NCBI RefSeq assembly: GCF_032444005.1
Contig: NC_091285.1
Coordinates: 19,840,001 to 19,904,000, forward strand
From: Ranitomeya imitator
Taxonomy: Eukaryota
Direction of reading: 5' to 3'
Length of the DNA stretch: 64,000 nucleotides
The stretch's first letter is position 1, and the number at the start of each line of letters is the position of its first letter. The notes beneath the pieces are model-generated. The model did not search any database. It had not been told where the DNA came from and saw only the letters and a list, made by a program, of their open reading frames with translations. Both the position numbers and the translations under genes were made by a program. Below are positions 1-61,770 of the stretch, piece by piece.

Positions 1-785
1 CAGGATCCTCCACATAGATCCCGCTCCTTATACCTGATATTACCTCACATAATGTGTGTAATGTGTGTGAGATCACAGCCACATCCAGGTCATCTCCATC
101 ATGGAGCTGTTTATCATGTCCTCCTGTGTCCTCATCACCTCCCTCCTCCTCAGGATCACACAAGTCACCGGTGTCTGGTTCCTGTAAGACAGTCAGTGGA
201 TCCGTCATGTTACACAGCTCCTCAATGTGTCTCATCTTCCTGGACAGCTCGTCCTTCTTTATTTCCAGCTGATGGATCCGAGCAGACAGTGACAGTGACT
301 CTTCCTTCTCCTGCCTGGAGATCTCACTCAGGACCTTCTTCTCCAGGTCGTCCACCCGTCTCCTGATGTCTGTACACAGGGCACTGACTCTCTCGGCTTC
401 TCCAGCTGCTTTTTCTTGAGCTTTTCTCCTGTGCTCCTCCAGACTCCGGACTCTTTCCTCAGTCTCCTTTCTCTTTGTGATCAGTTTCTGGAGAACATTT
501 CTCAATTTTTTCTTTTTCTTCCCTGAGGCCTCATCCAGTGACTCCATTTTATGTCCATTATGTTTCCCAATCAAACAGCAGGACACACAGATAGAAGCAG
601 CGTCCTCGGTGCAGTAATATTCCAGGATCTTCTTATGGACAGATGCATGTAAAGAAGCTGCGGAGACACCATCACGTGTTTCTCGACGCAAGCAGTGAAT
701 AGCCAGGCCTTTCCCCGGGAAGGAACAACCACGGGAAGGGCAGCATCCTATGAAGGAAAGCCACCTATGCCAAGCATGGTATCCA

Positions 786-830
786 TCCACAGACAGCTGT
801 TTCAGGGTTTTTGCCCCTCATCAGTGTGGA
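786..830 (-). ncRNA. Type I hammerhead ribozyme motif, copy 1
   Basis: The reverse complement reads UCCACA CUGAUGA GGGG-CAAAAA-CCCU GAAA CAGCUG UC^ UGUGGA: stem I, conserved core, stem II, palindromic mini stem III and a GUC cleavage triplet. Confidence 0.85.
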
Positions 831-1138
831 GTAGGAATCTGGCTATTAGGAGCAGTGCCTAGTAAAAAGGCTATAAGGGCACAGATGATTGGCCTCGGGG
901 AGACCAAAACATCCAACACCGCGGAGACACCATCACGTGTTTCTCAACGCAGTGATTCCAGAACACTGCCCCCATCCCTTATGGGAAATATGCAGATGCA
1001 TGTAAAGAAGCTGCGGAGACACCATCACGTGTTTCTCGACGCAAGCAGTGAATAGCCAGGCCTTTCCCCGGGAAGGAACAACCACGGGAAGGGCAGCATC
1101 CTATGAAGGAAAGCCACCTATGCCAAGCATGGTATCCA

Positions 1139-1183
1139 TCCACAGACAGCTGTTTCAGGGTTTTTGCCCCTCATCAGTGTGGA
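1139..1183 (-). ncRNA. Type I hammerhead ribozyme motif, copy 2
   Basis: Same 45-nt motif, 353 nt from copy 1. Confidence 0.85.
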
Positions 1184-1491
1184 GTAGGAATCTGGCTATT
1201 AGGAGCAGTGCCTAGTAAAAAGGCTATAAGGGCACAGATGATTGGCCTTGGGGAGACCAAAACATCCAACACCGCGGAGACACCATCACGTGTTTCTCAA
1301 CGCAGTGATTCCAGAACACTGCCCCCATCCCTTATGGGAAATATGCAGATGCATGTAAAGAAGCTGCGGAGACACCATCACGTGTTTCTCGACGCAAGCA
1401 GTGAATAGCCAGGCCTTTCCCCGGGAAGGAACAACCACGGGAAGGGCAGCATCCTATGAAGGAAAGCCACCTATGCCAAGCATGGTATCCA

Positions 1492-1536
1492 TCCACAGAC
1501 AGCTGTTTCAGGGTTTTTGCCCCTCATCAGTGTGGA
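1492..1536 (-). ncRNA. Type I hammerhead ribozyme motif, copy 3
   Basis: Same 45-nt motif, 353 nt from copy 2. Confidence 0.85.
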
Positions 1537-1935
1537 GTAGGAATCTGGCTATTAGGAGCAGTGCCTAGTAAAAAGGCTATAAGGGCACAGATGATTGGCC
1601 TCGGGGAGACCAAAACATCCAACACCGCGGAGACACCATCACGTGTTTCTCAACGCAGTGATTCCAGAACACTGCCCCCATCCCTTATGGGAAATATGCA
1701 GATGCATGTAAAGAAGCTGCGGAGACACCATCACCATCAGATGGTGTCTCCGCAGCTTCTTTACATGCATCTGCATATTTCCCATAAGGGATGGGGGCAG
1801 TGTTCTGGAATCACTGCGTTGAGAAACACGTGATGGTGTCTCCGCGGTGTTGGATGTTTTGGTCTCCCCGAGGCCAATCATCTGTGCCCTTATAGCCTTT
1901 TTACTAGGCACTGCTCCTAATAGCCAGATTCCTAC

Positions 1936-1980
1936 TCCACACTGATGAGGGGCAAAAACCCTGAAACAGCTGTCTGTGGA
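1936..1980 (+). ncRNA. Type I hammerhead ribozyme motif, copy 4 (inverted arm)
   Basis: tccaca ctgatga ggggcaaaaaccct gaaa cagctg tc^tgtgga, read directly on the + strand. Predicted cleavage is after 1974. Confidence 0.85.
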
Positions 1981-2689
1981 TGGATACCATGCTTGGCATA
2001 GGTGGCTTTCCTTCATAGGATGCTGCCCTTCCCGTGGTTGTTCCTTCCCGGGGAAAGGCCTGGCTATTCACTGCTTGCGTCGAGAAACACGTGATGGTGT
2101 CTCCGCAGCTTCTTTACATGCATCTGCATATTTCCCATAAGGGATGGGGGCAGTGTTCTGGAATCACTGCGTTGAGAAACACGTGATGGTGTCTCCGCGG
2201 TGTTGGATGTTTTGGTCTCCCCGAGGCCAATCATCTGTGCCCTTATAGCCTTCTTATGGACAGAACATTTCCTTTTCTCCAGAGAAGTGCTGGGATCAGA
2301 TAAGACGTGTTCTGCTGATTTGCTGTGAGATCTCAGGTGTTTATCACACAGAGAAGCCTCACAGTGTAGACAGGATCTAACAGCAGGTACCGGAGAGTCC
2401 ACACAGTAAGTGCAGCAGATCCCGGTGATCTCCTCTCGTTCTTGCTGAGTAGTCAGGAAACGTTCTGCGACATTATGGAGATTTATGTTCCTCATCAGTG
2501 TCGGCCGCTCCTGAAACTCTTCTCTGCATTCAGGACAGGAATAAACTCCAGACTCGTCCTGTGTATCCAGCACACGACCAATACAGACCCGGCAGAAGTT
2601 GTGTCCACATTTCAGTGTTACAGGGTCCTTAAATGTAGATAAACAGATGGAGCAGAGCAGCTCGTCTCTCAGAATAACAGACGCCATGG

Positions 2690-2914: not shown

Positions 2915-3805
2915 AGGGAACCTGTCACCCCTTTTTTCAGTACGAGATAAAAATACTGTTAAATAGGGCCTGAGCTGTGCGTTACAATAGTGTATTTTGT
3001 GTACCCTGATTTCCCACCTATGGTGCCGAAATACCTTACCAAAGTTGGCGTTTTCGCCTGTCAATCAGGCTGGTCTGGTCATATGGGCGTGGTGACATCG
3101 TTGTTTCTTCCCCCAGATCTTGCATATCTTTCCGTTGGTGGCGTAGTGGTTTGCGCATGCCCATCTTCTGAATCCACTGGGCAGGAGAAGAAAAAACGCG
3201 CGATCGGCGCTATTTCCCTGGTGATATGTGGGGGCGGCCATCTTCCTGAGGCCGCGCGTGCGCATATCGAGTCCTCTGCTGCCCGGGGCTTCAGGAAAAT
3301 GGCCGTGGGATGCCGCGCGTGCGCAGATGGAAATTGCGGTGGCTATTTTCCTGAAGCCGAGATGCGAACTCGACTTCAGGAAAGTGGCCGCCGCGATCTC
3401 CATCTGCGCACGCGCGGCATCCCGTGGCCATTTTCCTGAAGCCCCGTGCAGCAGAGCACTCCATCTGCGACCAAGCAGCCTCAGGAAGATGGCCGCCCCC
3501 ACTGATGACAGGGGTAATAGCGCAGATCGTGCGCTGTTTCTTCACCTGCGCGCAGTGGATTCGTAACTTGGACATGCGCACACCACTACGCCACCAACGG
3601 AAAGCTGGGGAAGAAAAGAGCGATGTCACCACGCCCACCTGACCTGACCAGCCTGATTGACAGGCGAAAACGGCGACTTTGGTAATGTATTTCGCAGCAT
3701 AGGTGGGGAATCAGGGTACACTACATACACTATTGTAACACACAGCGCAGGCCCTATTTAACAGTATTTTCATCTCAATCTGAAAAAAGGGGTGACAGGT
3801 TCCCT
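2915..3805. mobile_element. T2/Kolobok-type MITE, nearly palindromic throughout
   Basis: TTAA at 2911-2914 and 3806-3809. TIRs agggaacctgtcaccccttttttcag / ctgaaaaaaggggtgacaggttccct. Mirrored internal ORFs (MGAAIFLR... on both strands). Confidence 0.9.
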
Positions 3806-6233: not shown

Positions 6234-9200
6234 TTATAAAGTGAGGTGAGAGGAGTTCCAGCCGCTCCAGATCTTCTCAAATTTACCCGGGCATCCTCTA
6301 TTTTGATACAGTGTACGTTCGTATGGGATAATCGAATTTACTAACTCAACCCAGGCTCTGAGTGAGGGACACGAACCCCCCATCCACCACATTGCCACCA
6401 CCTTCCTTGCCATGAAAAGTGACTCTCGTAAGAAAATTGCAACGTGATGACCCCAAGTCTCCTCGCCCCACACCCCAAACAAACAATTTAGTGGCTCAAG
6501 AGGAACAGGGGCCAATACTATAGAGGAGAGTAATGAGGTCACCTCCTTCCAGTATTGAAGAACGACCGGGCAGCTCCACATCATGTGAACAAAGTCCGCA
6601 TCTGACAGGTGACAGCGCAGACATTCCGCAGAGTGAAGTCGACCCATTTTAAAAAGCCGCACGGGAGTTAGATATGATTGGTATATTATGTATAATTGTG
6701 TCATTCTGTTGTTAACCGATGGGGATACCCTCATCGGGGACTCTAAAATTTCCTCCCATTCTTCTTCCTGTGTGTCAGGAATGAGTCTCTCCCATTTCTC
6801 CTTAATGAGTCTTATAACTGATTCCGCACCTACTGATAGCATGTAAGTATATAAAGAGGAAATGAGGCCCTGGGGTCCCTGGGATTTGAGGATTCCTATT
6901 AGAGGCAGAGACGAGATTGTGCGGCCCGTAACCACCCCCCTCATATATGACTGGAAAGCTGATCTTAATTGTAAAAAACGAAAAAATTGGGATCTCGGAA
7001 TATCATGTTTAGTCTGCAACTGTTCAAAGGACACAAAGGTCCCCCGGTCATGTAGATCCCCCACCGAGGTAACACCATGCATCACCCAGAAGGCGGTGGA
7101 CGGGTGATTCAACAACGTTGGAAAATAGCTATTTCCCCAAAGGGGCATTTCAGCTATAATATCTGTATATCCAACAATTTTTTTAATTTGTCTCCAAATT
7201 AATCTTGCCAGTCGAAGCATGGGCAGCGGATGAGGGGTGATCATTCTCTCCGATTCTAGAAAACCCAATGGACACTCCACCCGAGCAGAATGAAGCAAAT
7301 GATGTTCAGAGTTAGGGAGATAACCACCAGGCATCCACGTGACCAATGCCTTAGCCTGCCCCGCCAGATAATATAGAAAGAAGTCCGGTAACGCCGCTCC
7401 ACCCCCCTGCTTAGGTCTCTGTAAAACAGAAAGTTTAAGTTTGGGCCTAGATTTTCCCCATATAAAGGAAGTTATTAGGGAGTTTAAATTAGTAAAGAGG
7501 AACTTAGGTACTGGTACTGCGCTATGTTGCAAACAATAATTAAATTTAGGGAGCAGAACCATTTTGATTAGGTTGATACGGCCCGCAACAGACAGTGGGA
7601 GTTTGCTCCATGATGCAAATTTGGATTTGACTAGTTCTAGTAAAGGATGAATATTAAGTTGTAAATCGGAATTGCTACTTTGGGACATATAAATACCCAG
7701 ATACTTAAAATTTGATACGACCGGTAGTGAGGACAGAGTTTCAAGATTTAACATGGGAGTATGAGAGAGAGGTAGTAGAGCAGATTTGTCCCAGTTTATA
7801 TACAGGCCAGAATATTTACTAAAGACGTCTATGATAGCAATTACTTTGGGCAGTGTTTCCTTTGCCTTATCCATGAATATTACCATATCATCGGCATATA
7901 GGCCGATGGTATCCACCCGACCCGCTATATCTATGCCTCTGATATCCGGGGAGGATCTCATACGTATTGCCAATGCCTCTATTGCGAGAGCAAAGAGAGC
8001 CGGTGAGAGGGGGCATCCCTGACGAGTTCCCCTAAACAATGAGAGGGACTTAGAGATGGAATTATTTATGATTATGCGCGCCGTAGGTTTCATATATAAT
8101 GCCCTGATCCACCCTAGAAATTTATCTCCAAAGCCATATCTCTGTAGGCATGCTGATAGAAAGGGCCATTCAAGAGAATCGAAGGCCTTGGCCGCATCCA
8201 AGGACGCTATTGCCCAATTGTTATCTGACATCAAAGAACTATATTGGATTATGGATTGAACTCGCCTAATGTTAATAGAAGTATTTTTGCCAGGCATAAA
8301 GCCAGTTTGATCTGGATGGATAAGGTCCAATATGATGGAATTCAGTCTAATGGCCAAAATTTTAGTGAAAATTTTATAATCTACATTAACTAACGATATG
8401 GGCCGATAGGAGCCACAATCCAGAAGGTCCTTCCCCTCCTTTTTAAGTATAACAATATTTGCCTCATAAAAGGTATCAGGCATGCATCCTCCCTCCCATA
8501 TGCCCTGGAACACCTTCAGTAGGAGTGGTGCTAGTATACCCCGGTATCTCTTATATAACTCAACAGGAAACCCGTCCGGCCCAGGAGCCTTCCCAGAGGA
8601 CATGTCCATTATGGCATATTCTACCTCTTCCAAAGTGAATGCAGCATCCATAAGTTCTCGCTGAGTGGGATTCAGTGTGGGGAATATTATATCTGATAAA
8701 TAATCTAGACATTGTGAAACGCCGAGGCTACTTTTGGAACTATATAATGATTCATAGTAGTCATAAAAACATTGAAGTATTTCTTCGGTCGTGGACACTA
8801 ATGAGCCGTCTGGCGCACGAATCTGTAATACTGTATTAGATGTATTATGTTGACGTACCAGATAGGCTAGGAATTTACCGGTTTGATTTCCCAATTCAAA
8901 GTATGACTGACGCGTGAAGAACAGCTTACGTTTAGATTTGGTGTCCATGTGTTGAGTGTATAATCTCTGTGAGGTCAACCATTCAATTCTATTGCCATTG
9001 GTTTGGCTGGCTATATATGCGGCCTCCGCATCTCTCAGTCTCTGTTCCACCCCGTCGTCCTCCCTCAAGGTCACCCTTTTTATGTATGTAATTGTGGAGG
9101 ACAGGCATCCCCTCAAGTATGCTTTGAGGGTGTCCCAGAATAAATTGGTGCTCTGGGGCTCTGGGTGAGACGATATGAAACAATTTAACTGATCCTCTGT

Positions 9201-10001
9201 TCTGTCGTTATTATCCATTAGTTTAAGCCAAAAGGGGTTCAGCTTCCAGACCATGCCACTCCTTGATTGTCCAAATTTGAGTTTAAGTATAATCGGGCTA
9301 TGGTCCGATATCCCCCTATTACCGTGTTCCACGTTATCCACCCATGTTACCAGCCCACTAGAACCAAATATGTAATCTATGCGAGATAGGGATTGTCTAG
9401 TAGATGAGTGACAGGTGTATCCCCGCACTCCAGGGTGACGTATCCGCCACAGGTCAAGCCATCCACTACTCTCTATAAATGATGCCAATTGGGTCGGGGC
9501 CGAAGAGGGGGGCTCCCCAGATCCCCCGTCATCTAGTCTCAATTTATCAAGGCTATTATCCATGACTAAGTTAAAGTCTCCCATACAAATGACTTGTGCG
9601 TCCGGATAATTTAGAGCAAAGCTCATTGCCATCCGGAGAACTGACATACTAGCAGGGGGAGGGTTATAGACACATAAAATCACATATTCGCTAGAATTGA
9701 TTAATGCATGCACAAATACAAATCGGCCATCAGGGTCTCTTCGAGCCTCCTTAGCTTCCCACCTAACATCTCTATGTATTAACAATGAAACTCCTCTCGA
9801 GTAGCTGGTGTGGAAAGCATGTATGTACCATTGTACCCACGGCTTCTGTATATATCGGGCCGTATCCCTGGTCAGATGAGTCTCCACAAGGGCTATTATG
9901 TGAGGGTGGTAGTGCCTGATTTGCGAGAAAACCTTAATTTTCTTTCGGGGGGATTTGATGCCTCGTATATTCCACGTCATGCACACTATTTCAGACCCCA
10001 T
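6234..10001 (-). CDS. L1 ORF2p: APE endonuclease, reverse transcriptase and CCHC domain, 1255 aa
   Basis: TWNIRG...ETH...GDFN...SRIDY...SDH (APE). YRPISL, SLDAAKAFD, GTRQGCPLSP, YADD (RT). CLRC...H..WSC at the C-terminus. No stops. Confidence 0.97.
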   Translation of the reverse strand: MGSEIVCMTWNIRGIKSPRKKIKVFSQIRHYHPHIIALVETHLTRDTARYIQKPWVQWYIHAFHTSYSRGVSLLIHRDVRWEAKEARRDPDGRFVFVHALINSSEYVILCVYNPPPASMSVLRMAMSFALNYPDAQVICMGDFNLVMDNSLDKLRLDDGGSGEPPSSAPTQLASFIESSGWLDLWRIRHPGVRGYTCHSSTRQSLSRIDYIFGSSGLVTWVDNVEHGNRGISDHSPIILKLKFGQSRSGMVWKLNPFWLKLMDNNDRTEDQLNCFISSHPEPQSTNLFWDTLKAYLRGCLSSTITYIKRVTLREDDGVEQRLRDAEAAYIASQTNGNRIEWLTSQRLYTQHMDTKSKRKLFFTRQSYFELGNQTGKFLAYLVRQHNTSNTVLQIRAPDGSLVSTTEEILQCFYDYYESLYSSKSSLGVSQCLDYLSDIIFPTLNPTQRELMDAAFTLEEVEYAIMDMSSGKAPGPDGFPVELYKRYRGILAPLLLKVFQGIWEGGCMPDTFYEANIVILKKEGKDLLDCGSYRPISLVNVDYKIFTKILAIRLNSIILDLIHPDQTGFMPGKNTSINIRRVQSIIQYSSLMSDNNWAIASLDAAKAFDSLEWPFLSACLQRYGFGDKFLGWIRALYMKPTARIIINNSISKSLSLFRGTRQGCPLSPALFALAIEALAIRMRSSPDIRGIDIAGRVDTIGLYADDMVIFMDKAKETLPKVIAIIDVFSKYSGLYINWDKSALLPLSHTPMLNLETLSSLPVVSNFKYLGIYMSQSSNSDLQLNIHPLLELVKSKFASWSKLPLSVAGRINLIKMVLLPKFNYCLQHSAVPVPKFLFTNLNSLITSFIWGKSRPKLKLSVLQRPKQGGGAALPDFFLYYLAGQAKALVTWMPGGYLPNSEHHLLHSARVECPLGFLESERMITPHPLPMLRLARLIWRQIKKIVGYTDIIAEMPLWGNSYFPTLLNHPSTAFWVMHGVTSVGDLHDRGTFVSFEQLQTKHDIPRSQFFRFLQLRSAFQSYMRGVVTGRTISSLPLIGILKSQGPQGLISSLYTYMLSVGAESVIRLIKEKWERLIPDTQEEEWEEILESPMRVSPSVNNRMTQLYIIYQSYLTPVRLFKMGRLHSAECLRCHLSDADFVHMMWSCPVVLQYWKEVTSLLSSIVLAPVPLEPLNCLFGVWGEETWGHHVAIFLRESLFMARKVVAMWWMGGSCPSLRAWVELVNSIIPYERTLYQNRGCPGKFEKIWSGWNSSHLTL

Positions 10002-10311: not shown

Positions 10312-11205
10312 TCAAGACTCCCCATGAGATCGTAGCCATTCGGTCACCTCCGCCGGATCCGTGAAAAACACCGAAGAACCCTTGTAGACAACACGGAGCC
10401 GGGCCGGGAAGACCATTGAATAGATGATATTTTTGTCTCTGAGTTGCTTCTTGATCTCCATAAATCTGGCCCTTTGTTTTTGAAGTTCCACTGAGAAATC
10501 CGGGAAGATCGAGATTACAGCATTATCGAATTTAATAGGGCTTTTCTGCCGTGCCAACCGTAAAATAGTATCTCTATCCTTGCAATTGAGGATCCGTGCC
10601 AGAAAAGGTCTAGGAGGGGTCCCGGGAGGAAGAGATTTTGTGGGTACTCGATGGGCTCTTTCCACAGCAAATGTCGATGAGAATTCATCTCCCAGAGAAG
10701 ATTTGAGCCACCCCTCCAGGAATGCCTCAGGTTGTTGACCCTCTGAACGCTCCGGCAGACCAATGATACGGATATTATTCCGGCGTAGTCTGTTCTCTAG
10801 GTCATCTGCCTTTTGTTTCCAGGCATTTATAGAGCCGGCTACTTTTGTCAACTTGGCCTCCATGGGTGTGATGGTATCTTCCACATGTGATACCCTCTCC
10901 TCTACTTCTGTAATGCGTCCCTTCATAGTCTGCATATCTTGACGGAGACGTCCCACCTCGGTGTGTACATCCTCTATCTTCTCAGTGAGAGATGTTCTGG
11001 TTAGGGAAATAGCTTGCATTAACTGGTCCGACGCTTGTTTAAGCGTCAGTTCCTCCTGTTCACTTCCCTCAGTACCATCAGAGGGACGATTTTTGCGTTG
11101 CATTTGAGAGGGGTTATTTCTCAGGTTACGTGTGTTATCAGAGGGATCAATTCTGGCAAATTCCTTCAGTTTGTCAGCTGCCCCTGAGCCCTTAGTGCGC
11201 TGCAT
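10312..11205 (-). CDS. L1 ORF1p (coiled coil, RRM, CTD), 297 aa
   Basis: First ATG at 11205 (MQRTKGSG...); the ORF-track start at 11259 is non-ATG. DLENRLRRNNIRIIGLPE, VERAHR, IFPDFS and FPARLRV motifs. Confidence 0.95.
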   Translation of the reverse strand: MQRTKGSGAADKLKEFARIDPSDNTRNLRNNPSQMQRKNRPSDGTEGSEQEELTLKQASDQLMQAISLTRTSLTEKIEDVHTEVGRLRQDMQTMKGRITEVEERVSHVEDTITPMEAKLTKVAGSINAWKQKADDLENRLRRNNIRIIGLPERSEGQQPEAFLEGWLKSSLGDEFSSTFAVERAHRVPTKSLPPGTPPRPFLARILNCKDRDTILRLARQKSPIKFDNAVISIFPDFSVELQKQRARFMEIKKQLRDKNIIYSMVFPARLRVVYKGSSVFFTDPAEVTEWLRSHGES

Positions 11206-11973
11206 GATTAGCAAGGTCAGAGTCACAGTATATATATATAAGCCCAGCAAAGTTATCACAGGATGGTGATTGCAGCAAACTGAAGTTTAAGTTATAAGTG
11301 GGGCAATCTCAAAGTTCCACTGGGGTGCCACGCACCAGGGAAGGTTCACTGTGCCTGCAGTGTCAGCAGCCAAAAGAGGGATCCAAAGCCCTCAGGGGTA
11401 ATGGCACCGAGAAGTGGAGTGTCTTATATATGAGGAGCGCAGGGCCCAATCTTCCAGGGCACACACCGCGCGTCCTCCCAATGTGTCCCGGATATGTGCT
11501 CGCACCCCCACTCCTACAGTGCTGCAGAGATATTAAGATGGCGCCGCGTCTTCAACTGCCGAAGCGCGCGCTCTGAGGGTGACAGCCGCCCCACACAGGC
11601 ACCACCTTCGCCCCAGTCTCTCACTCACCCGGTGCACCGCTAGCTCTCAGCGCTCACCGCTAGTGTCGGTAATCGCCTGGTGATCAGAGCGCGGCCCCGT
11701 CCCGATTCAGAGCGGCACCGCGCTTCTCCTCGCAAAGCACGCTCTGCCCAAGATGGCCGCTTCCCAGCCGCGGGTCCCGAGATCTTTAGTCCCCGCAGCT
11801 CCCCGGCCAAATCGATCTCTCGGCAGGGTCCCGGAAAGTCGCCTGGAGTCTAGGGGGTTCGGCGGTGGTGAATATATCACCGTATGCAGGGGTCTTGGTG
11901 CAGGATATTCAGAAGGATTGGGGAGCTCTCTCGCAGTGCGTCCTCTCTCCTTCACTACATAGCCACGCCCCCC

Positions 11974-15242: not shown

Positions 15243-16037
15243 CTAGATGATGGTCTAACGCATCGGGTATTCTAGAATATGTCGCACTGTGACTGACAGA
15301 ACTTGTTCAGTAAACATGAGTGAACTACGTGACACTGTGACTGACAGAGCTTATTCAGTAAACATGACTGAACTACGTGGCACTGTGACTGACAGAACTT
15401 GTTCAGTAAATGTGACTGAACTACGTGGGACTGTGACTGACAGAACTTGTTCAGTAAACGTGACTGAACTACGTGGCACTGTGACTGACAGAACTTGTTC
15501 AGTAAACGTGACTGAACTACGTGGCACTGTGACTGACAGAACTTGTCCAGTAAACGTGACTTAACTACGTGACACTGTGACTGACAGAACTTGTTCAGTA
15601 AACGTGACTGAACTACGTGAACTGTGACTGACAGAACTTGCTCAGTAAATGTGACTGAACTACATGGCACTGTGACTGACAGAACTTGTCCAGTAAACGT
15701 GACTGAACTACGTGACACTGTGACTGATAGAACTTGTTCAGTAAACGTGACTGAACTACGTGGCACTGGGACTGACAGAACTTGTTCAGTAAACGTGACT
15801 GAACTACGTGCCACTGTGACTGACAGAACTTGTCCAGTAAACGTGACTGAACTACGTGACACTGTGACTGACAGAAGTTGTTCAGTAAACGTGACTGAAC
15901 TACGTGACACTGTGACTGACAGAACTTGTTCAGTAAACGTGACTGAACTGCGTGGCACTGTGACTGACAGAACTTCGCCAATCAGCGACGCGGGATTTCC
16001 GTTACAGACAGACAGAATTAGACGATTATATAGTAGA
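15243..16037 (-). mobile_element. Non-autonomous Helitron carrying a 48-bp minisatellite
   Basis: The minus strand reads A|TCTACTATATAA...CATCTAG|T: 5' TC, 3' CTAG, inserted between A and T, no TSD. The subterminal hairpin is not clearly intact. Confidence 0.7.
15285..15975 (+). repeat. 48-bp minisatellite, about 14 copies
   Basis: Unit cactgtgactgacagaacttgttcagtaaacgtgactgaactacgtgg. 1-nt deletion near 15620. Confidence 0.97.
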
Positions 16038-17852: not shown

Positions 17853-18377
17853 TAAATGTCCAAGAAAAGTGGATGTAATTTCATGAAAACTCTGCCCTCT
17901 GTGAGTCCAAAGACGATGTTGAACTGTGCAATTTTTGGTGCATTTTTTCCCTATAAGCTTCTACATGGAACCTGAAAAAAACACATGTAAGAAAACTGCA
18001 GTTGTATTTTTAGGCGCAGAATCAAAGCTTTTCTGTACAGTAAAAAAAAAGCATTAAAAAACGCTGCCTCAATTCTGCACCAAAAATGCATCAAATAAGG
18101 GGGACGGGTATTAAAAAAATGCAGTGAAAACGCAATAATCAGAAAAGATTGTTGTTGCATCTTGTGGTGCAGACACCTGCAGAAAATGTGCAGATGAAAA
18201 GTAGAAGAAAAAAATGCAGCATTTACGCTATGTATAAAAACAGCCTCAGTGTTAAATTTTTATTAACTGTTTTATGGATAGAATTGAGTGAATGAATGGA
18301 GAAATAAAATCAATCACTCCATTTTTATGCCATTTATCAATCATGCATGCTCACATTCCTTCTCTGGGGCCTCTATT

Positions 18378-18740
18378 TCTGCCCTTTTGCGTGCTGCATT
18401 GTCCTCCATTTCTGCCTTTTCGTGTGCTACGCTGTCTTCCATTTCTGCCTTCTCGTGTGCTACGCTGTCTTCCATTTCTGCCTTCTCGTGTGCTACGCTG
18501 TCTTCCATTTCTGCCTTCTCGTGTGCTACGCTGTCTTCCATTTCTGCCTTCTCGTGTGCTACGCTGTCTTCCATTTCTGCCTTCTCGTGTGCTACGCTGT
18601 CTTCCATTTCTGCCTTCTCGTGTGCTACGCTGTCTTCCATTTCTGCCTTCTCGTGTGCTACGCTGTCTTCCATTTCTGCCTTCTCACGTGCTGCGCTCAT
18701 TTCCATTTCTGCTCTCTTGAACGCTGTGCTCGCTTCCATT
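18378..18740 (-). repeat. 33-bp in-frame repeat (11 aa; EMEDSVAHEKA x8 plus 3 diverged units) in a coiled-coil-like ORF remnant
   Basis: ORF 18341..18781(-). Eight near-identical units flanked by diverged units that keep the E-M-E periodicity. Confidence 0.9.
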
Positions 18741-20070: not shown

Positions 20071-21675
20071 TTACGTTTTAATCCTCACCCAGCTATCTAA
20101 ATAGCGTCCAAAAAAATGTTCCCCAAATACACATAACGCCGCATGAAGGGGCTCGGAGAAGGTGGCAGTGAAGGTGTGTAAGTGTCTGATGGGGTCACAC
20201 AGCTCATAAAAGGACAACTGCCCGACCTCATAATCCAGACATATCCTGAATCTATTACTGGAGATCTTGTCAGGTAACCGGATCTCTTTACTGTCATGTA
20301 TAACTGAGTACTGATACTTATATCTCCACAAACTCCAGGACTTGTTATTATTTCCAATGTATGATCTACCTCCCCTCCTCTCTATACTGGGATAACACAT
20401 ACCCACCCTCCAACCCCCTGATCTCCTGCTCTCCACATCCCAGTAATGGCGTCCTGAGGTAAATCCTCTCCTGCTCATCACCTGATAATCCTGGAATCTC
20501 TCTGCTGTTTCTGGACGATTTAGTTCCTCTTGTGTCCCTGATGCAGTTTTCAGGTCGTCTGATATAAGGAGATTATTAGCGGCTGTGGTTACATCCAGTA
20601 ATATGTCTGCAGGATCCTCCACATAGATCCCCCTCCTTATACCTGATATTACCTCACATAATGTGTGTAATATGTGTGAGATCTCAGCCACATCCAGGTC
20701 ATCTCCATCATGGGGCTGTTTATCATGTCCTCCTGTGTCCTCATCACCTCCCTCCTCCTCAGGATCACACAAGTCACCGGTGTCTGGTTCCTGTAAGACA
20801 GTCAGTGGATCCGTCATGTTACACAGCTCCTCAATGTGTCTCATCTTCCTGGACAGCTCGTCCTTCTTTATTTCCAGCTGATGGATCAGAGCAGACAGTG
20901 ACAGTGACTCTTCCTTCTCCTGCCTGGAGATCTCACCCAGGACCTTCTTCTCCAGGTCGTCCACCCGTCTCCTGATGTCTGTACACAGGGCAGTGACTCT
21001 CTCGGCTTCACCAGCTGCTTTTTCTTGAGCTTTTATACTTCGCTCCTCCAGACTCCGACCCCTTTCCACAATCTCCTCTTTCTTTGTGGTCAGTTTCTGG
21101 AGAACAGTTCTTAGTTTTTTTTTCTTCTTCTTCCAGGCCTCATCCAGTGACTCCATTTTATGTCCTCTATGTTTCTCAATCAAAGTACAGGACACACAGA
21201 TACAAGCCGCGTCCTCAGTGCAGTAATATTCCAGGATCTTCTTATGGACAGAACATTTCCTTTTCTCCAGAGAAGTGCTGGGATCAGATAAGACGTGTTC
21301 TGGTGATTTGCTGTGAACCCTCAGGTGTTTATCACACAGAGAAGCCTCACAGTGAAGACAGGATCTAACAGCAGGTACAGGAGAGTCCACACAGTAAGTG
21401 CAGCAGATCCCGGTGATCACCTCTTGTTCTTGCTGAGTAAACAGGAAACGTTCTGCGACATTATGGAGATTTATGTTCCTCATCAGTGCCGGCCGCTCCC
21501 GAAACTTTTCTCTGCATTCAGGACATGAATAAACTTCAGACCCGTCCTGTGTATCCAGCGCACGATCAATACAGACCCGGCAGAAGTTGTGTCCACATCT
21601 CAGCGTTACAGGGTCCTTAAAAATAGATAAACAGATGGAGCAGAGCAGCTCGTCTCCCAGAATAGCAGACGCCAT
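20071..21675 (-). CDS. TRIM E3 ligase copy 2, RING-Bbox1-Bbox2-CC-PRY/SPRY, 534 aa, single coding exon
   Basis: C3HC4 RING (CSIC...CGHNFC...C...CPEC), CTYC...C..C....C..H..H B-box1, CSVH...C...C....H..H B-box2, GRHYWDVE and GQLSFY SPRY motifs. Confidence 0.96.
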   Translation of the reverse strand: MASAILGDELLCSICLSIFKDPVTLRCGHNFCRVCIDRALDTQDGSEVYSCPECREKFRERPALMRNINLHNVAERFLFTQQEQEVITGICCTYCVDSPVPAVRSCLHCEASLCDKHLRVHSKSPEHVLSDPSTSLEKRKCSVHKKILEYYCTEDAACICVSCTLIEKHRGHKMESLDEAWKKKKKKLRTVLQKLTTKKEEIVERGRSLEERSIKAQEKAAGEAERVTALCTDIRRRVDDLEKKVLGEISRQEKEESLSLSALIHQLEIKKDELSRKMRHIEELCNMTDPLTVLQEPDTGDLCDPEEEGGDEDTGGHDKQPHDGDDLDVAEISHILHTLCEVISGIRRGIYVEDPADILLDVTTAANNLLISDDLKTASGTQEELNRPETAERFQDYQVMSRRGFTSGRHYWDVESRRSGGWRVGMCYPSIERRGGRSYIGNNNKSWSLWRYKYQYSVIHDSKEIRLPDKISSNRFRICLDYEVGQLSFYELCDPIRHLHTFTATFSEPLHAALCVFGEHFFGRYLDSWVRIKT

Positions 21676-30585: not shown

Positions 30586-32187
30586 TTAACTTCTAATCCT
30601 TAACCAGCTATCTACGTAGCATCCTTTGACCTTTCTCCAAAATACACAAAAAGCAACATGGAGGGGCTCGGAGAAGGTGGCAGTGAAGGTGTGTAAGTGC
30701 CTGATGGGATCACAAAGCTCATAAAAGGACAACTGCCCGGCCACATAATCCAGACAAATCCTGAATTTATCACTGGAGATATTGTCGGGCAAAAGAATTT
30801 CTTTCTTGTCATGTCTCATAAAATAATGATTACTATGTGTTCTGCACAAACTCCAGGACTTATTATTATTTCCAGCGTATGACTGACGGCCTCTTCTGTC
30901 TATACTGGGATAACACATCCCCACCCTCCCACATCCTAATCTACTGATCTCCACATCCCAGTAATGTTGTCCTGAGGAAAATCCCCTCGTGCTCATCACC
31001 TGATAATCCTGGAATCTCTCTGATGTTTCTGGACGTTTCTGCTTCTCTTCTTTCCAAATTGCAGTTTTCAGGTCGTCTGATATAAGAAGATTATTAGAAG
31101 CTGTGGTTACATCCAGTAATATGTCTGCAGGACCCTCCACATAGATCCCGCTCCTTATACCTGATATTACCTCACATAATGTGTGTAATGTGTGTGAGAT
31201 CTCAGCCACATCCAGGTCATCTCCATCATGGAGCTGTTTATCATGTCCTCCTGTGTCCTCATCACCTCCCTCCTCCTCAGGATCACACAAGTCACCGGTG
31301 TCTGGTTCCTGTAAGACAGTCAGTGGATCCCTCATGTTACACAGCTCCTCAATGTGTCTCATCTTCCTGGACAGCTCGTCCTTCTTTATTTCCAGCTGCT
31401 TGGTAAGAGTAGACAGTGACACTTCCTTTTCCTGCCTGGAGATCTCACACAGGACCTTCTTCTCCAGGTCGTCCAGCTGTCTCCTGAGGTCTACAAACAG
31501 GGCAGTGACTCTCTTGGCTTCTCCAGCTGCCTTTTTTTGAACTTTTCTCCTGTGATCCTTCAGAGTCTGGACTTTCTCCTCTGTTCTCTTTTTCTTTGTG
31601 ATCAGTTTCTGCAGAACATTTCTCAGTTTCGTCTTCTTCTTCTCTGAGGCCTCATCCAGCATCTCCACCCGATGTCCCCGATGTTCTCCAGCCAAACTAC
31701 AGGACACACACATACAAACAGCGTCCTCAGTGCAGTAATATTCCAGGATCTTCTTATGGACAGAACATTTCCTTTTCTCCAGAGAAGTGCTGGGATCAGA
31801 TAAGACGTGTTCTGGTGATTTGCTGTGAACTTTCAGGTGTTTATCACACAGAGAAGCCTCACAGAGTAGACAGGATCTAACAGCAGATACAGGAGAGTCC
31901 ACACAGTAAGTGCAGCAGATCCCGGTGATCTCCTCTTGTTCTGAATGAGTAACCAGGAAACGTTCTGCGACATTATTGAGATTTATGTTCCTCATCAGTG
32001 TAGGCCGCTCCCAAAACTCTTCTCTGCATTCTGGACAGGAGTAAACTTCCGACTTCTCCTGTGTATCCAGCACAAGATCAATACAGACCCGGCAGAAGTT
32101 GTGTCCACATCTCAGTATTACAGGATCCTTAAAAATAGATAAACAGATGGAGCAGAGCAGCTCGTCTCTCAGATCAGCAGACGCCAT
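30586..32187 (-). CDS. TRIM E3 ligase copy 3, 533 aa
   Basis: Same architecture. The true start is taken as MASADLRD at 32187; the upstream ATG at 32244 lies 5' of the conserved acceptor. Confidence 0.95.
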   Translation of the reverse strand: MASADLRDELLCSICLSIFKDPVILRCGHNFCRVCIDLVLDTQEKSEVYSCPECREEFWERPTLMRNINLNNVAERFLVTHSEQEEITGICCTYCVDSPVSAVRSCLLCEASLCDKHLKVHSKSPEHVLSDPSTSLEKRKCSVHKKILEYYCTEDAVCMCVSCSLAGEHRGHRVEMLDEASEKKKTKLRNVLQKLITKKKRTEEKVQTLKDHRRKVQKKAAGEAKRVTALFVDLRRQLDDLEKKVLCEISRQEKEVSLSTLTKQLEIKKDELSRKMRHIEELCNMRDPLTVLQEPDTGDLCDPEEEGGDEDTGGHDKQLHDGDDLDVAEISHTLHTLCEVISGIRSGIYVEGPADILLDVTTASNNLLISDDLKTAIWKEEKQKRPETSERFQDYQVMSTRGFSSGQHYWDVEISRLGCGRVGMCYPSIDRRGRQSYAGNNNKSWSLCRTHSNHYFMRHDKKEILLPDNISSDKFRICLDYVAGQLSFYELCDPIRHLHTFTATFSEPLHVAFCVFWRKVKGCYVDSWLRIRS

Positions 32188-33239
32188 GGCTGACACGGAA
32201 GAAGTATGACACCGGTTAAACAGTAAAGTCGTAGTTACGCCCATTTACTTAACCCCTTAAGGAGACAGCATGCTATTTTTTGTTATTGAATTACTGCAGT
32301 ATAAAAGCCATAACCTTTTTGTTTTTTTCTGTTAACTTTGCCATTTAGTGGTTTTTTTTATGAGTCCAGTTATCTGTCACTAGTTTGTGGTACATGTAAT
32401 ATATTGTATAACGTCAATACTTTTCTTTATTTTTTTCCATCGAGAAGGGGCATGCAATATCAACACTGTATTCTACAATTTATTTATAAAATATTCACTT
32501 TTCAATGCCATAATTGTCACAAACATTATATTATAAGGATTTTTTGCAATAATAGCATTGCAAAATGTATCACTTTTTATATTTAGCACAATTAAAAAAG
32601 CTTTTTTTTTTAAATAATTTCAATTTGGGCTAATGCATTTCAAGTACCAAAATCCATTTATTTTTCGATTTACAGAGCTTTTTGAGGGTTTGCTGTTTGC
32701 AGGCTGACTTGTAGTTTTTAGTGATACCTTTTTAGTGCAAATAAAATTTATCAATTATGTTTTATTTCATTTTTTTGTCTCAACAAAAAAAAAATCTACA
32801 TTTTTTACAACGTTCACTAAGCTTGTAAAAATTTGGTCATGCCAGTGATTTCACTTATTGATATATTGATTTTTGAACAGTTTATTAAATAATACAACAC
32901 TTCATAGAAAGAAAAAGGTTTTTTTACTTTATTTTTTCCCCCCACCAGGGGACTTAAACATGCAATTCTTTGATTGGTTCTATAAAATTACATAATAATG
33001 CAATACTCCTGAAACTGAGTATAAATTCATAGACATTCTGTAAATACAGACCACTTTTTTTAATTGACCATAATAAAATGGCGGTCTGCGATTTTTGTTT
33101 TGTTCTCTTTAAAAAAAAATCTTAAAACATTTTTAAAAAAAAAGGCGCATAAACATTTTTGGCAACAGAAATACAATGCAGGGGGAATGCCCAAGGAGGA
33201 AAGAAATTATCTGCATTCATTCAATGAAAAAAATTGTTG

Positions 33240-37845: not shown

Positions 37846-40797
37846 GTGCTGGATTGGAAAAATATGTTGGTGACTAGTTGGGGTTGTCGAGGAGTACATA
37901 GTGACGTTCCTTTGATGTCAATTTCCTCTTCCCCCTCTTCTGAGGTCCCTGAGTTTTTGTCGGATTTCCAGGATGTATTTGATGAGCCCAAGTCCAGTTC
38001 CCTCCCTCCACATAGGGACTGTGATTGTGCTATTAACTTGATTCCTGGTTGTAAGTTCCCTAAGGGCCGACTTTTCAATCTGTCTGTGCCAGAGCATGCC
38101 GCCATGTGGAGTTATGTTAAGGAATCTTTGGAGAAAGGGCATATTCGGCCCTCTTCGTCACCATTGGGAGCGGGTTTCTTTTTTGTTGCTAAGAAGGATG
38201 GCTCCTTGAGACCCTGTATTGATTATCGTCTGCTTAATAAGATCACGGTCAAATTCCAATACCCCTTGCCTTTGCTTACTGATTTGTTTGCTCAGATTAA
38301 GGGGGCTAGTTGGTTTACTAAGATTGACCTCCGAGGGGCATATAATCTTGTTTGTATTAAACAGGGTGATGAATGGAAAACTGCATTTAATACGCCCGAA
38401 GGCCATTTTGAATACCTTGTGATGCCATTTGGGCTCTCTAATGCTCCATCTGTGTTCCAGTCTTTCATGCATGATATTTTCCACAATTATCTTGATAAAT
38501 TCATGGTCGTATATTTGGATGATATTTTGATTTTTTCCAATGATTGGGAGTCTCATGTGAAGCAGGTCAGGATGGTGTTCCAGATCCTTCGTGATAATGC
38601 TTTATTTGTGAAGGGGTCTAAGTGCCTATTCGGAGTTCAGAAGGTCTCTTTTTGGGGTTTTATTTTTTCTCCCTCGTCTATAGAAATGGATCCTGTTAAG
38701 GTCCAGGCTATTCATGACTGGATCCAACCCACATCTGTGAAGGGTCTTCAAAAATGTTTGGGCTTTGCTAATTTCTATCGCCGTTTCATTGCCAACTTTT
38801 CCAGTGTGGTTAACCCCCTTACTGATTTGACGAAGAAAGGCGCTGATGTGACGAATTGGTCCTCTGGGGCTGTTGAGGCCTTTCAGGAGCTTAAGCGCCG
38901 ATTTACTTCTGCCCCTGTGTTGCGTCAACCGGATGTTTCTCTTCCTTTTCAGGCTGAGGTCGACGCTTCTGAGATTGGGGCAGGGGCCGTTTTGTCTCAG
39001 AGGGAGTCTGATGGTTCTTTGATGAAACCATGTGCTTTTTTTTCCAGAAAGTTTTCACCTGCGGAACGCAATTATGATGTCGGCAATCGGGAGTTGTTGG
39101 CTATGAAGTGGGCGTTTGAGGAGTGGCGACATTGGCTTGAGGGAGCTAAACACCGTGTTGTGGTCCTGACCGATCATAAGAATCTGATTTACCTCGAGTC
39201 GGCCAAGCGGCTGAATCCTAGACAGGCTCGATGGTCCCTGTTTTTCTCCCGTTTTGATTTCGTGGTCTCGTATCTTCCGGGACCTAAGAATGTTAAGGCT
39301 GATGCCCTCTCTAGGAGTTTTTCGCCTGATTCTCCTGGAGTCCTTGAGCCGGTTGGCATTCTTAAGGAGGGGGTGATTCTTTCTGCTATCTCCCCTGATT
39401 TGCGGCGGGTGCTTCAGGAATTTCAGGCTGATAGGCCTGGCCGCTGTCCAGTAGGGAAGCTGTTTGTTCCTGATAGATGGACAAGTAAAGTAATTTCTGA
39501 GGTTCATTGTTCAGTGTTGGCTGGTCATCCTGGGATTTTTGGTACCAGAGATTTGGTTGCTAGGTCCTTTTGGTGGCCTTCCTTGTCGCGCGATGTGCGT
39601 GCTTTTGTGCAGTCCTGTGGGACTTGCGCCCGGGCCAAGCCTAGCTGTTCCCGCGCTAGTGGGTTGCTTTTGCCTTTGCCGGTCCCTGAGAGGCCCTGGA
39701 CGCATATTTCCATGGATTTTATTTCGGATCTTCCTGTTTCCCAGAAGATGTCTGTTATCTGGGTTGTTTGTGACCGGTTCTCTAAAATGGTCCATCTGGT
39801 ACCTCTGCCTAAGTTGCCTTCCTCCTCAGATCTGGTTCCATTATTTTTTCAGCATGTGGTTCGTTTGCATGGCATTCCGGAGAATATTGTGTCTGACAGA
39901 GGTTCTCAGTTTGTCTCTAGATTTTGGCGGGCCTTTTGTGCTAGGATGGGCATTGATTTGTCTTTTTCTTCGGCGTTTCATCCTCAGACTAATGGCCAAA
40001 CTGAGCGAACTAATCAGACCTTGGAGACCTATTTGAGATGCTTTGTGTCTGCTGATCAGGATGATTGGGTGTCTTTCTTGCCGTTGGCCGAGTTTGCCCT
40101 TAATAATAGGGCTAGTTCGGCTACTTTGGTTTCACCTTTCTTTTGTAATTTTGGTTTTCATCCTCGTTTTTCTTCTGGGCAGGTTGAGCCTTCTGATTGT
40201 CCTGGTGTTGATTCTGTGGTGGACAGGCTGCAGCAGATTTGGACTCATGTGGTGGACAATTTGACGTTGTCTCAGGAAAGGGCTCAACGTTTTGCTAACC
40301 GCCGTCGGTGTGTTGGTCCCCGGCTTCGTGTGGGGGATTTGGTTTGGTTGTCTTCTCGTCATGTTCCTATGAAGGTTTCTTCTCCTAAATTTAAGCCTCG
40401 GTTTATTGGTCCTTATAAAATTTCTGAAATTATTAATCCGGTGTCTTTTCGTTTGGCTCTTCCTGCCTCTTTTTCCATTCATAATGTTTTCCATAGATCT
40501 TTGTTGCGGAGATATGTGGTGCCCGTTGTTCCCTCGGTTGACCCTCCTGCCCCGGTGTTGGTTGAGGGAGAGTTGGAATATGAGGTTGAGAAGATTTTGG
40601 ATTCTCGTTTTTCGAGGCGGAGGCTTCAGTATCTTGTCAAGTGGAAGGGTTATGGCCAGGAGGATAATTCTAGGGTTGTTGCCTCCGATGTCCATGTCAC
40701 CGATTTGGTTTGTGCTTTTCACTTGGCTCGTCCTGATCGGCCTGGGGGCTCTGGTGAGGGTTCGGTGACCCCTCCTCAAGGGGGGGTACTGTTGTGA
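37846..40797 (+). CDS. Gypsy pol remnant: RT (YLDD), RNase H, integrase (HHCC, DDE) and chromodomain, open for 983 codons
   Basis: KKDGSLRPCIDY, IDLRGAYN, YLDD, VDAS, TDHKNL, H..GH..C..C, SMDF/SDRG/QTE, EYEVEKILDSR...YLVKWKGYG. The start is non-ATG and most of the protease is missing. Confidence 0.9.
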   Translation: MLDWKNMLVTSWGCRGVHSDVPLMSISSSPSSEVPEFLSDFQDVFDEPKSSSLPPHRDCDCAINLIPGCKFPKGRLFNLSVPEHAAMWSYVKESLEKGHIRPSSSPLGAGFFFVAKKDGSLRPCIDYRLLNKITVKFQYPLPLLTDLFAQIKGASWFTKIDLRGAYNLVCIKQGDEWKTAFNTPEGHFEYLVMPFGLSNAPSVFQSFMHDIFHNYLDKFMVVYLDDILIFSNDWESHVKQVRMVFQILRDNALFVKGSKCLFGVQKVSFWGFIFSPSSIEMDPVKVQAIHDWIQPTSVKGLQKCLGFANFYRRFIANFSSVVNPLTDLTKKGADVTNWSSGAVEAFQELKRRFTSAPVLRQPDVSLPFQAEVDASEIGAGAVLSQRESDGSLMKPCAFFSRKFSPAERNYDVGNRELLAMKWAFEEWRHWLEGAKHRVVVLTDHKNLIYLESAKRLNPRQARWSLFFSRFDFVVSYLPGPKNVKADALSRSFSPDSPGVLEPVGILKEGVILSAISPDLRRVLQEFQADRPGRCPVGKLFVPDRWTSKVISEVHCSVLAGHPGIFGTRDLVARSFWWPSLSRDVRAFVQSCGTCARAKPSCSRASGLLLPLPVPERPWTHISMDFISDLPVSQKMSVIWVVCDRFSKMVHLVPLPKLPSSSDLVPLFFQHVVRLHGIPENIVSDRGSQFVSRFWRAFCARMGIDLSFSSAFHPQTNGQTERTNQTLETYLRCFVSADQDDWVSFLPLAEFALNNRASSATLVSPFFCNFGFHPRFSSGQVEPSDCPGVDSVVDRLQQIWTHVVDNLTLSQERAQRFANRRRCVGPRLRVGDLVWLSSRHVPMKVSSPKFKPRFIGPYKISEIINPVSFRLALPASFSIHNVFHRSLLRRYVVPVVPSVDPPAPVLVEGELEYEVEKILDSRFSRRRLQYLVKWKGYGQEDNSRVVASDVHVTDLVCAFHLARPDRPGGSGEGSVTPPQGGVLL

Positions 40798-61577: not shown

Positions 61578-61770
61578 GGCTGACGGAAGAAGGAAGGAAA
61601 CTGACCTTCCCTCACCCCGAGTTGTTGTTACACCCATTTCATTAACCCCTTAAGGACAGTTGCGTGCCACTATTTTGTGGAACATACAATGGGTATGGAA
61701 AGTAAATCCATAATGATCCAGCACACCTTATCGATAATAAAAAACATTTACTTTATTCAAATCCTCTTAA

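Follow-up and report, generated by a model that had tools for sequence, protein, structure and literature searches.

How does a block of short tandem repeats, with a hammerhead ribozyme in each unit, come to interrupt a coding exon? The question is raised by positions 640 to 2252 of a 64,000-nt stretch of the genome of the frog Ranitomeya imitator (RefSeq assembly GCF_032444005.1, contig NC_091285.1, forward strand 19,840,001 to 19,904,000), which we call the window and whose numbering is used throughout. An earlier note on this DNA had recognised a 353-bp tandem repeat with four hammerhead cores, and had read it as a young insertion of a small retroelement processed by its own ribozymes. Our analysis makes it highly probable that the element is an animal retrozyme lacking long terminal repeats (a non-LTR retrozyme), with a unit of 353 nt, present here as one recent retro-insertion in the B-box exon of a TRIM gene.

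Hammerhead ribozymes of the repeat unit

The window contains four complete type I hammerheads, three on the minus strand and one on the plus strand, and all of them lie within the insert. An exact 33-nt core, CTGATGAGGGGCAAAAACCCTGAAACAGCTGTC, is found at 792-824(-), 1145-1177(-), 1498-1530(-) and 1942-1974(+), with none expected in 100 shuffles. On the ribozyme strand the motif reads 5'-UCC UAC UCCACA / CUGAUGA / GGGG-CAAAAA-CCCU / GAA / ACAGCUGU / C^ / UGUGGA U GGA. Stem I (UCCACA/UGUGGA) is extended by UCC/GGA beyond a UAC/U internal loop, stem II has 4 bp and is capped by the loop CAAAAA, and the conserved catalytic core (C3 U4 G5 A6 N7 G8 A9, G12 A13 A14, A15.1-U16.1 and H17) is complete in 4/4 copies. 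These hammerheads are assigned to type I because helix I is the open helix.

Helix III consists of only two pairs (A15.1-U16.1 and C-G) around AGCU, and its eight bases form the palindrome ACAGCUGU. When helix III is a palindrome of 2 bp, two ribozymes in a multimeric transcript should pair as a double hammerhead. The canonical monomer fold is predicted at -11.4 kcal/mol, against -17.7 kcal/mol for the most stable fold, whereas two copies folded together reach -42.3 kcal/mol, which is 6.9 kcal/mol better than 2 x -17.7 for separate monomers. The predicted co-fold has an intermolecular helix III of 8 bp and forms stem I in trans, the double-hammerhead arrangement known for amphibian ribozymes (PMC7229834).

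For an independent scoring, metagenome contigs were scanned for the core pattern with helix II left free, and 19 contigs (L001-L019) were obtained. Only the ribozyme is common to these contigs and the frog unit, so they are usable for covariation and uninformative on the frog family. They come from a few metagenome projects; loop 2 (CAAAAA) and the palindromic helix III are as in the frog unit, stem I has a UA(C)/U internal loop, and the flanks are unrelated. Presumably they derive from animal host DNA in those samples, and this type of hammerhead motif is widespread. When 17 of the 19 were aligned with the window copy, the proposed helices paired in 86% of the alignment cells, compared with 25-39% for slid partners, and 11 of the 15 pairs changed on both sides, including all six pairs of the proximal stem I. 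A covariance model (R1), built from 18 natural hammerheads of the metagenome set with the window copy excluded, scores all four sites at 70.7 bits (E about 1e-21), all 15 pairs being standard at each, and the next best score in the 64 kb is 12.2 bits (E 0.29). Since the search pattern for the relatives was derived from this core, the independent support extends to helices I and II only.

With exact cores and high model scores at all four sites, the hammerheads of the earlier note are borne out, as is its list of parts (stem I with its extension, CUGAUGA, stem II, GAAA, the palindrome and the GUC site). Its three predicted minus-strand cuts are correct, and a fourth can be added on the plus strand (Table 1).

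A single insertion in the B-box exon of a TRIM gene

Tandem Repeats Finder, applied to the window, reports a period-353 array at 640-1734 (3.1 copies, 99% matches), which is the repeat that the earlier note described, and inverted copies follow at 1740-2252. The repeat search reports an inverted arm at 1740-2256 that matches 1216-1732 at 100% complementarity over 517 nt, the two arms being 7 nt apart. Counted base by base, the arms have two mismatches, one at 1249, which is a change made after insertion, and one at 2253, so that the short arm in fact ends at 2252. The whole insertion of about 1.6 kb thus runs through 3.10 units one way and then 1.46 units reversed, head to head. The sense 3' end of the long arm sits at the left flank and that of the short arm at the right flank, where CTT (2250-2252) is common to the arm and the target-site duplication. 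The repeat itself stands as first described, and the duplication, the broken TRIM exon and the head-to-head geometry are additions of the present analysis. Unit coordinates (r) follow the ribozyme strand, r1 being the base just after the cut and r353 lying at the GUC, with the arm ends derived from the repeat and fold data.

Table 1. Features of the insertion and of the window, with r-coordinates referring to the 353-nt unit
Feature	Coordinates	Strand	Evidence or remark
Left target-site duplication, CTTCTTATGGACAGA	629..643	.	longest flanking direct repeat, 15 bp
Right target-site duplication, CTTCTTATGGACAGA	2250..2264	.	perfect, 15/15
Long arm	640..1734	-	3.10 tandem 353-bp units; ribozyme (sense) strand is minus; r117, three turns, to r152
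Short arm	1740..2252	+	1.46 inverted units; sense strand is plus; r119 to r278
Central head-to-head junction	1733..1739	.	7-nt asymmetric spacer ACCATCA between perfect arms
Type I hammerhead, copy 1	780..837	-	exact core and model R1 (70.7 bits, E 1.4e-21, all 15 pairs standard); predicted cut 792^791
Type I hammerhead, copy 2	1133..1190	-	exact core and model R1; predicted cut 1145^1144
Type I hammerhead, copy 3	1486..1543	-	exact core and model R1; predicted cut 1498^1497
Type I hammerhead, copy 4	1929..1986	+	exact core and model R1; predicted cut 1974^1975
31-nt repeat, twice per unit	660..690, 921-951 and so on; sense r102-132 and r194-224	.	repeat search and folding
Broken TRIM exon, N-terminal piece (RING and first part of B-box region)	2250..2687	-	ends ...EKRKCSVHKK at the insertion
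Broken TRIM exon, continuation (SVHKKILEYYCTED..., B-box and coiled coil)	1..643	-	open to window start
L1-like ORF2, APE endonuclease and reverse transcriptase	6234-10001	-	1255 aa, uninterrupted; domain scan
Coiled-coil ORF preceding the L1-like ORF	10312-11259	-	315 aa; ORF scan
Ty3/gypsy-type pol ORF (reverse transcriptase/RNase H/integrase/chromodomain)	37846-40797	+	983 aa; domain scan
Tc1/mariner-type DDE transposase ORF	46267-47094	-	275 aa; domain scan

The units are nearly identical. Their sole difference, C896/C1602 against T1249, is a CpG-to-TpG change and hence most likely a deamination after insertion. A blastn search of the window with the unit detected no copy elsewhere in the 64 kb, and the repeat search found no terminal repeats in the insert besides the units themselves. 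With a G+C content of 51.6% the unit differs from the window as a whole (43.1%). The 31-nt repeat that occurs twice per unit folds into a small hairpin containing the palindrome CACGTG. The 101-aa open reading frames (ORFs) of the unit have no Pfam match at E<=1, in agreement with the earlier note, which saw no recognisable protein-coding content.

The flanks belong to a RING/B-box/coiled-coil (TRIM) gene on the minus strand, whose frame runs up to the insert (...EKRKCSVHKK) and resumes with SVHKKILEYYCTED... beyond it. Four intact paralogues (20071-21675, 30586-32244, 44277-45881 and 59976-61637) are uninterrupted at this site and read EKRKCSVHKKILEYYCTEDA, with ILEFYC in the last of them. 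The last 4 nt of the left duplication (CAGA, 640-643) also match the unit, as do the first 3 nt of the right duplication. Because these end bases also fit the unit, the true duplication measures 8-15 bp, with microhomology at both junctions.

Four sequencing runs were compared with positions 440-1000. An empty-site form, in which 643 is joined straight to the sequence of 2265-2294, is present in 47 stranded poly(A) RNA reads from a related species and in one contig from organism A, and the joint falls exactly where the duplication predicts. Since the empty-site reads are mostly 90-95% alike, they come from orthologues or paralogues, and an insertion polymorphism is not thereby shown. The block is a single insertion in the B-box exon of one member of the TRIM cluster. 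That both halves of the exon are still open and the units near-identical indicates a very recent event, and the youth claimed for the insertion by the earlier note is upheld on these grounds, together with a duplication that matches at 15/15 positions.

The broken copy (1-2687) is one of at least five single-exon TRIM genes (RING/B-box/coiled-coil/PRY-SPRY) that are closely related, arranged in tandem and all on the minus strand, and the four intact ORFs of the cluster encode 534-553 aa. According to stranded poly(A) reads from the related species, transcription of this family is from the minus strand.

Could the locus have arisen differently? The inverted arm might be an artefact of assembly or long-read sequencing (a palindromic chimera), in which case the true locus would hold the direct array only. 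Some long-read libraries are known to generate perfect inverted repeats separated by a tiny spacer, and no contig in the examined runs bridges either junction. We nevertheless regard a chimera as very improbable, since the arms differ in length (1095 and 513-517 nt), the two outer ends adjoin the proper halves of one and the same exon and bear matching duplications, which is not expected of a fold-back read, and the same layout is typical for Penelope-type insertions (PMC8557442). A second possibility is an event at the DNA level, either a satellite grown by unequal crossing-over or extrachromosomal circular satellite DNA reintegrated at a break. The tandem structure alone would be compatible with it, and local amplification by unequal crossing-over has been favoured for the growth of retrozyme arrays in Xenopus (Li, Clavereau and Pollet 2026; bioRxiv 10.64898/2026.07.22.740005). 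However, the 15-bp duplication is perfect, both ends show microhomology of 3-4 nt and the divergence among the 4.5 units is near zero, all of which indicates one staggered-cut insertion that was multimeric from the start, and an inverted arm is not a product of unequal crossing-over, so that this origin also has very little probability here.

The inverted repeat has consequences of its own. A permissive Rfam search returned MIR869 (150.9 bits) and mir-3156 (52.4 bits) at 1603-1869, due solely to the head-to-head hairpin. MicroRNA genes at 500-2400 were rejected: the matches at permissive thresholds, all to plant and animal precursor models (MIR869 at 150.9 against a gathering score of 330 bits, mir-3156 and others), are artefacts of the perfect inverted repeat centred at 1737. 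TRIM transcription through the insert would yield an RNA with a perfect hairpin of about 513-517 bp, which is a possible source of small RNAs directed against the retrozyme family.

Class of the element and its proposed relation to Penelope

Non-LTR retrozymes are defined by units of a few hundred bp in tandem, a type I hammerhead in every unit, no coding capacity, no LTR and a long target duplication (PMC7229834). The locus conforms in its tandem units (about 150-450 bp is the accepted range, with a type I hammerhead per unit in at least two consecutive units), in being non-coding and without an LTR, in a target duplication of 15 bp where more than 4 bp is called for, and in lacking a primer-binding site and a polypurine tract, although no explicit search for these two was made. 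It also resembles metazoan non-LTR retrozymes in the weak palindromic helix III of amphibian type, which calls for dimers, and in the predicted compactness of the unit's fold (z about -3 to -4). The class, which depends on Penelope-like elements, is already published, frog families included (Cervera and de la Peña 2020; Li et al. 2026), and the present locus adds a family member at most.

The 353-nt family exists beyond this locus. A 383-nt contig from run X18 is a closed cycle (353 + 30 nt), and two further runs contain joints at which the sequence steps back by 351 nt and includes 2 additional letters, making 353. A subfamily of the unit, seen in runs X1 and X24, has ...CTATAA-ACATAAGGATGAATGACCTCGGGGA in place of ...CTATAAGGGCACAGATGATTGGCCTCGGGGA at 877-895, and judged by these sequences there are at least two variants of the family in organism A.

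The unit further contains ATGCAGAT (981-1000 and its repeats, ATATGCAGATGCATGTAAAG), which is one mismatch from the octamer ATGCAAAT; a variant contig of run X1, with AATATGCAA joined before position 643, would give ATGCAAAT exactly. Newt satellite 2 is reported to have an snRNA-type (small nuclear RNA) promoter with an octamer, and the octamer-like ATGCAGAT may be a candidate promoter element in the frog unit.

The layout of the insert, with partial tandem units and an adjacent inverted truncated copy inside one target duplication, corresponds to the Penelope-type signature. Partial tandems with an adjacent inverted 5'-truncated copy are typical of Penelope insertions (PMC8557442), and a purified Penelope-like enzyme cuts and extends both target strands and begins reverse transcription internally on RNA (PMC11167929). 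The proposed mobilisation by a Penelope-type reverse transcriptase (RT) fits the tandem-plus-inverted layout.

The same likeness raises the alternative that the insert is itself a 5'-truncated autonomous Penelope-like element, of which only terminal-repeat (pseudo-LTR, or pLTR) sequence is left, and that no separate non-autonomous family exists. Many Xenopus retrozyme families do align to Penelope terminal repeats (Li et al. 2026). This explanation is unlikely, if somewhat less so than an artefact or a DNA-level origin. Among the scanned ORFs of at least 180 aa in the window, which carry APE and RT (L1-like), Ty3/gypsy pol, Tc1-type transposase or TRIM domains, no gene with RT and GIY-YIG (Penelope) domains was found inside or beside the insert, and the only RT genes, L1-like and Ty3/gypsy-like, are 4 kb and 35 kb away. 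Moreover, the unit closes on itself with a period of 353 in other runs, and the insert amounts to 4.5 unit lengths without unique Penelope sequence. The truncated Penelope end that the earlier note had set against its own interpretation is not seen here, as the unit adjoins host exon sequence on both sides, with no Penelope gene next to it. The distinction between a truncated Penelope element and a separate family is partly one of naming.

Proposed processing and integration

As a linear monomer the unit folds at -132.4 kcal/mol (z -3.3), with stem I of the ribozyme closing the molecule, and as a circle at -126.9 kcal/mol, with 67% of its bases paired (z about -4 relative to mononucleotide shuffles); the antisense strand folds about equally well. 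Double hammerheads would cut a multimeric transcript after GUC into 353-nt monomers, which a tRNA-type ligase could circularise. For expression, cleavage and circularisation this scheme would follow what is established for the class (PMC7229834).

Both antisense strands, which have cDNA polarity, extend unbroken from a host 3' end and run inwards to the middle of the insert, and the layout is thus as expected if both nicked target strands primed reverse transcription. In this process, a Penelope-like RT/GIY-YIG enzyme acting in trans would cut the two target strands 15 bp apart, and both 3'-OH ends would prime reverse transcription on retrozyme RNA through microhomology of 3-4 nt (CAGA on the left and AAG on the right). 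One cDNA would extend for 3.1 unit lengths and the other for 1.46. The two cDNAs, being of the same polarity, would be joined head to head inside CACGTG, and each would then template the other strand. Arms of these lengths would require, as template, either a 353-nt circle that was copied round several times or a linear transcript of several units.

The inner ends of the arms, r117 and r119, both fall inside a CACGTG palindrome (r114-119), which is one of seven palindromic sites of at least 6 nt in the unit and is located in the loop region of the twice-occurring 31-nt hairpin. Two cDNAs of like polarity can pair with each other nowhere but at a palindrome, and joining at this site would explain why the inner ends coincide. 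The hexamer CCATCA is duplicated at the centre (1728-1733 and 1734-1739). At two other loci, represented by contigs of run X24, the element boundaries are at 872/873, a few bases from the equivalent of the right outer end (867-870), which hints at a preferred start of reverse transcription near r272-278.

Alternatively, the inverted arm could have been made by the long cDNA snapping back on itself, and this would account for the coinciding inner ends. Snap-back requires a self-priming site, however, and none was found at the 3' end, and it ignores the proximity of the right outer end to the 872/873 boundaries of the two other loci.

Evidence that weighs against the proposed interpretation

Several observations do not favour a retrozyme insertion made in this way. 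The Rfam hammerhead models (RF00163, RF02275 and others), proposed as a check in the earlier note, gave no match at gathering scores, and the best match, to Hammerhead_HH9, stayed at 20 bits where 52 are required and was seen solely in a search confined to 101 nt. All four copies have G10.1-U11.1 at the foot of helix II and not the canonical G10.1-C11.1 (C-to-U at a CpG, plus-strand position 804). Metazoan non-LTR retrozymes have a G+C content below 50%, a descriptive criterion that the unit exceeds marginally, and they are known as linear and circular RNA of unit length. For the present element no sign of RNA, cleavage or circles was found. The sampled part of a poly(A) RNA run from the related species, about 6%, contained zero reads on the unit and covered the TRIM flank only, a result that does not imply silence. 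The closed 353-nt contig and the period-353 joints would look alike if they came from tandem DNA, the library type of these runs being uncertain and none being recorded as RNA. In Xenopus, only one of nine retrozyme dimers cleaved in vitro (Li et al. 2026), and the lizard ribozyme required a protein. The Penelope partner acting in trans is inferred. The centre of the insert, ACCATCAC-CATCA-GATGGT, departs by a few bases from a perfect palindrome, with CATCA where GT is expected; later repair of an unstable perfect palindrome could have produced this. The palindrome-joining step is one that we infer from a single junction. Finally, PAc, a Penelope-like element of a lizard, used mainly unprocessed RNA as its substrate and inserted equally well when its ribozymes were dead (PMC11167929), so that this locus can be explained without cleavage or circles.

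The change at position 11.1 can be placed within the family. The earlier note implied a base other than C at this position, and U is indeed found in all four copies, while family contigs in three other runs (X1, X18 and X24) have C11.1 (plus-strand 804 A>G). The same contigs have A at 877, where the insertion locus has G. Both changes are common to all 4.5 units and were thus already present in the template, which on this sequence comparison is a sub-lineage with a CpG-to-UpG change in its ribozyme. Because the family has G-C and this copy has G-U at the foot of helix II, cleavage may be weakened here. A G-U pair at 10.1-11.1 occurs in 2 of 18 aligned natural hammerheads, and the axolotl ribozyme HHR_Amex2 tolerates U-U at these positions with modest activity (PMC7229834). 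The U11.1 ribozyme is probably weakened rather than dead.

As to the template, complete identity of the units slightly favours a circle, while the PAc data and the predicted weakness of the ribozyme favour a linear multimer. A bolder proposal is that the locus is a snapshot of how Penelope head-to-head structures are built, by dual priming, palindrome pairing and rolling-circle copying of a 353-nt RNA circle. We consider this possible though doubtful. If it were true, and other fold-back copies also met at palindromes, it would explain the tandem and inverted Penelope architecture, which has long been unexplained, and would be genomic proof of rolling-circle reverse transcription of a ribozyme circle.

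Comparison with known systems

Among amphibians, 57 Xenopus retrozyme families have been described that are related to Penelope terminal repeats, and 0.24-0.32% of the Xenopus copies are in exons (Li et al. 2026). These retrozymes are thus rarely exonic, whereas the present insert lies within a coding exon. Satellite 2 of newts and salamanders and the axolotl retrozymes Rtz_331 and Rtz_353 resemble the locus in a unit of about 330-350 nt, in a minimal helix III that has a palindromic tetraloop as its cap and in double-hammerhead cleavage, which here is predicted from sequence. HHR_Amex2 likewise combines a 2-bp helix III with a weakened base of helix II. In contrast, axolotl arrays reach enormous copy numbers, while the frog locus is a dispersed insertion of 4.5 units with a target duplication. 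Homology to Rtz_353 was rejected; the equal length seems coincidental, and no likeness was evident outside the ribozyme when the Ax353 supplement sequence was compared by eye, unaligned.

Penelope-like elements of the Poseidon and Neptune clades, with hammerheads in their pseudo-LTRs, have a short helix III and the partial tandems with an inverted 5'-truncated copy in common with the locus. Cutting and extension of both target strands, as shown for Penelope-like elements in vitro (PMC11167929), corresponds to the dual priming proposed here. Unlike the locus, these elements have an RT/GIY-YIG ORF and a 'tail' of 30-40 bp, none of which was recognised in the insert, and the lizard element prefers ATT at its nicks, whereas the sites here, CAGA^ACAT and GAAG^ATCC, do not follow this preference. 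LINE-1 (long interspersed nuclear element 1) twin priming, which produces 5' inversions, is similar in that both target 3'-OH ends prime on RNA and inverted and direct segments lie within one duplication. It differs in that the insert has no poly(A) and its template was read over several unit lengths, and classical twin priming does not predict inner ends at the same unit coordinate inside a palindrome. The Rfam family Hammerhead_HH9 (RF02275), from introns of amniotes and frogs, shares the type I topology, loop 2 CAAAAA and a UAC-type internal loop in stem I. However, its helix III is longer, and it occurs as a conserved intronic motif in single copy rather than as a repeat.

Other features of the window

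The L1-like ORF and the coiled-coil ORF before it (Table 1) may together form an intact LINE. An inverted repeat at 3230-3500, just upstream of the TRIM start, has arms of 132 nt that are 87% complementary, with 7 nt between them, and may be a small fold-back element or one resembling a miniature inverted-repeat transposable element (MITE). Two minisatellites lie inside mechanical ORFs, one at 15284-15975 (48-bp unit, 14.4 copies, 93%) and the other at 18375-18712 (33-bp unit, 10.2 copies, 95%).

Implications for retrozyme mobility

This copy is nearly unaltered since integration, and its junctions bear on how such elements integrate. The copy shows that the multimer (3.1 + 1.46 units) was deposited in one event, with a 15-bp duplication, and did not grow later by unequal crossing-over, the route suggested for arrays (Li et al. 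2026). A signature in common with autonomous Penelope-like elements would tie the mobility of retrozymes to the Penelope enzyme. The junctions, with microhomology at both primers and palindromic inner ends, offer testable detail for a transposition cycle that is largely undefined. For the host, the event is a rare exonic hit by a retrozyme that knocked out one paralogue of a TRIM cluster. For the retrozyme family, it indicates that a variant with a ribozyme predicted to be weakened by U11.1 was still mobilised.

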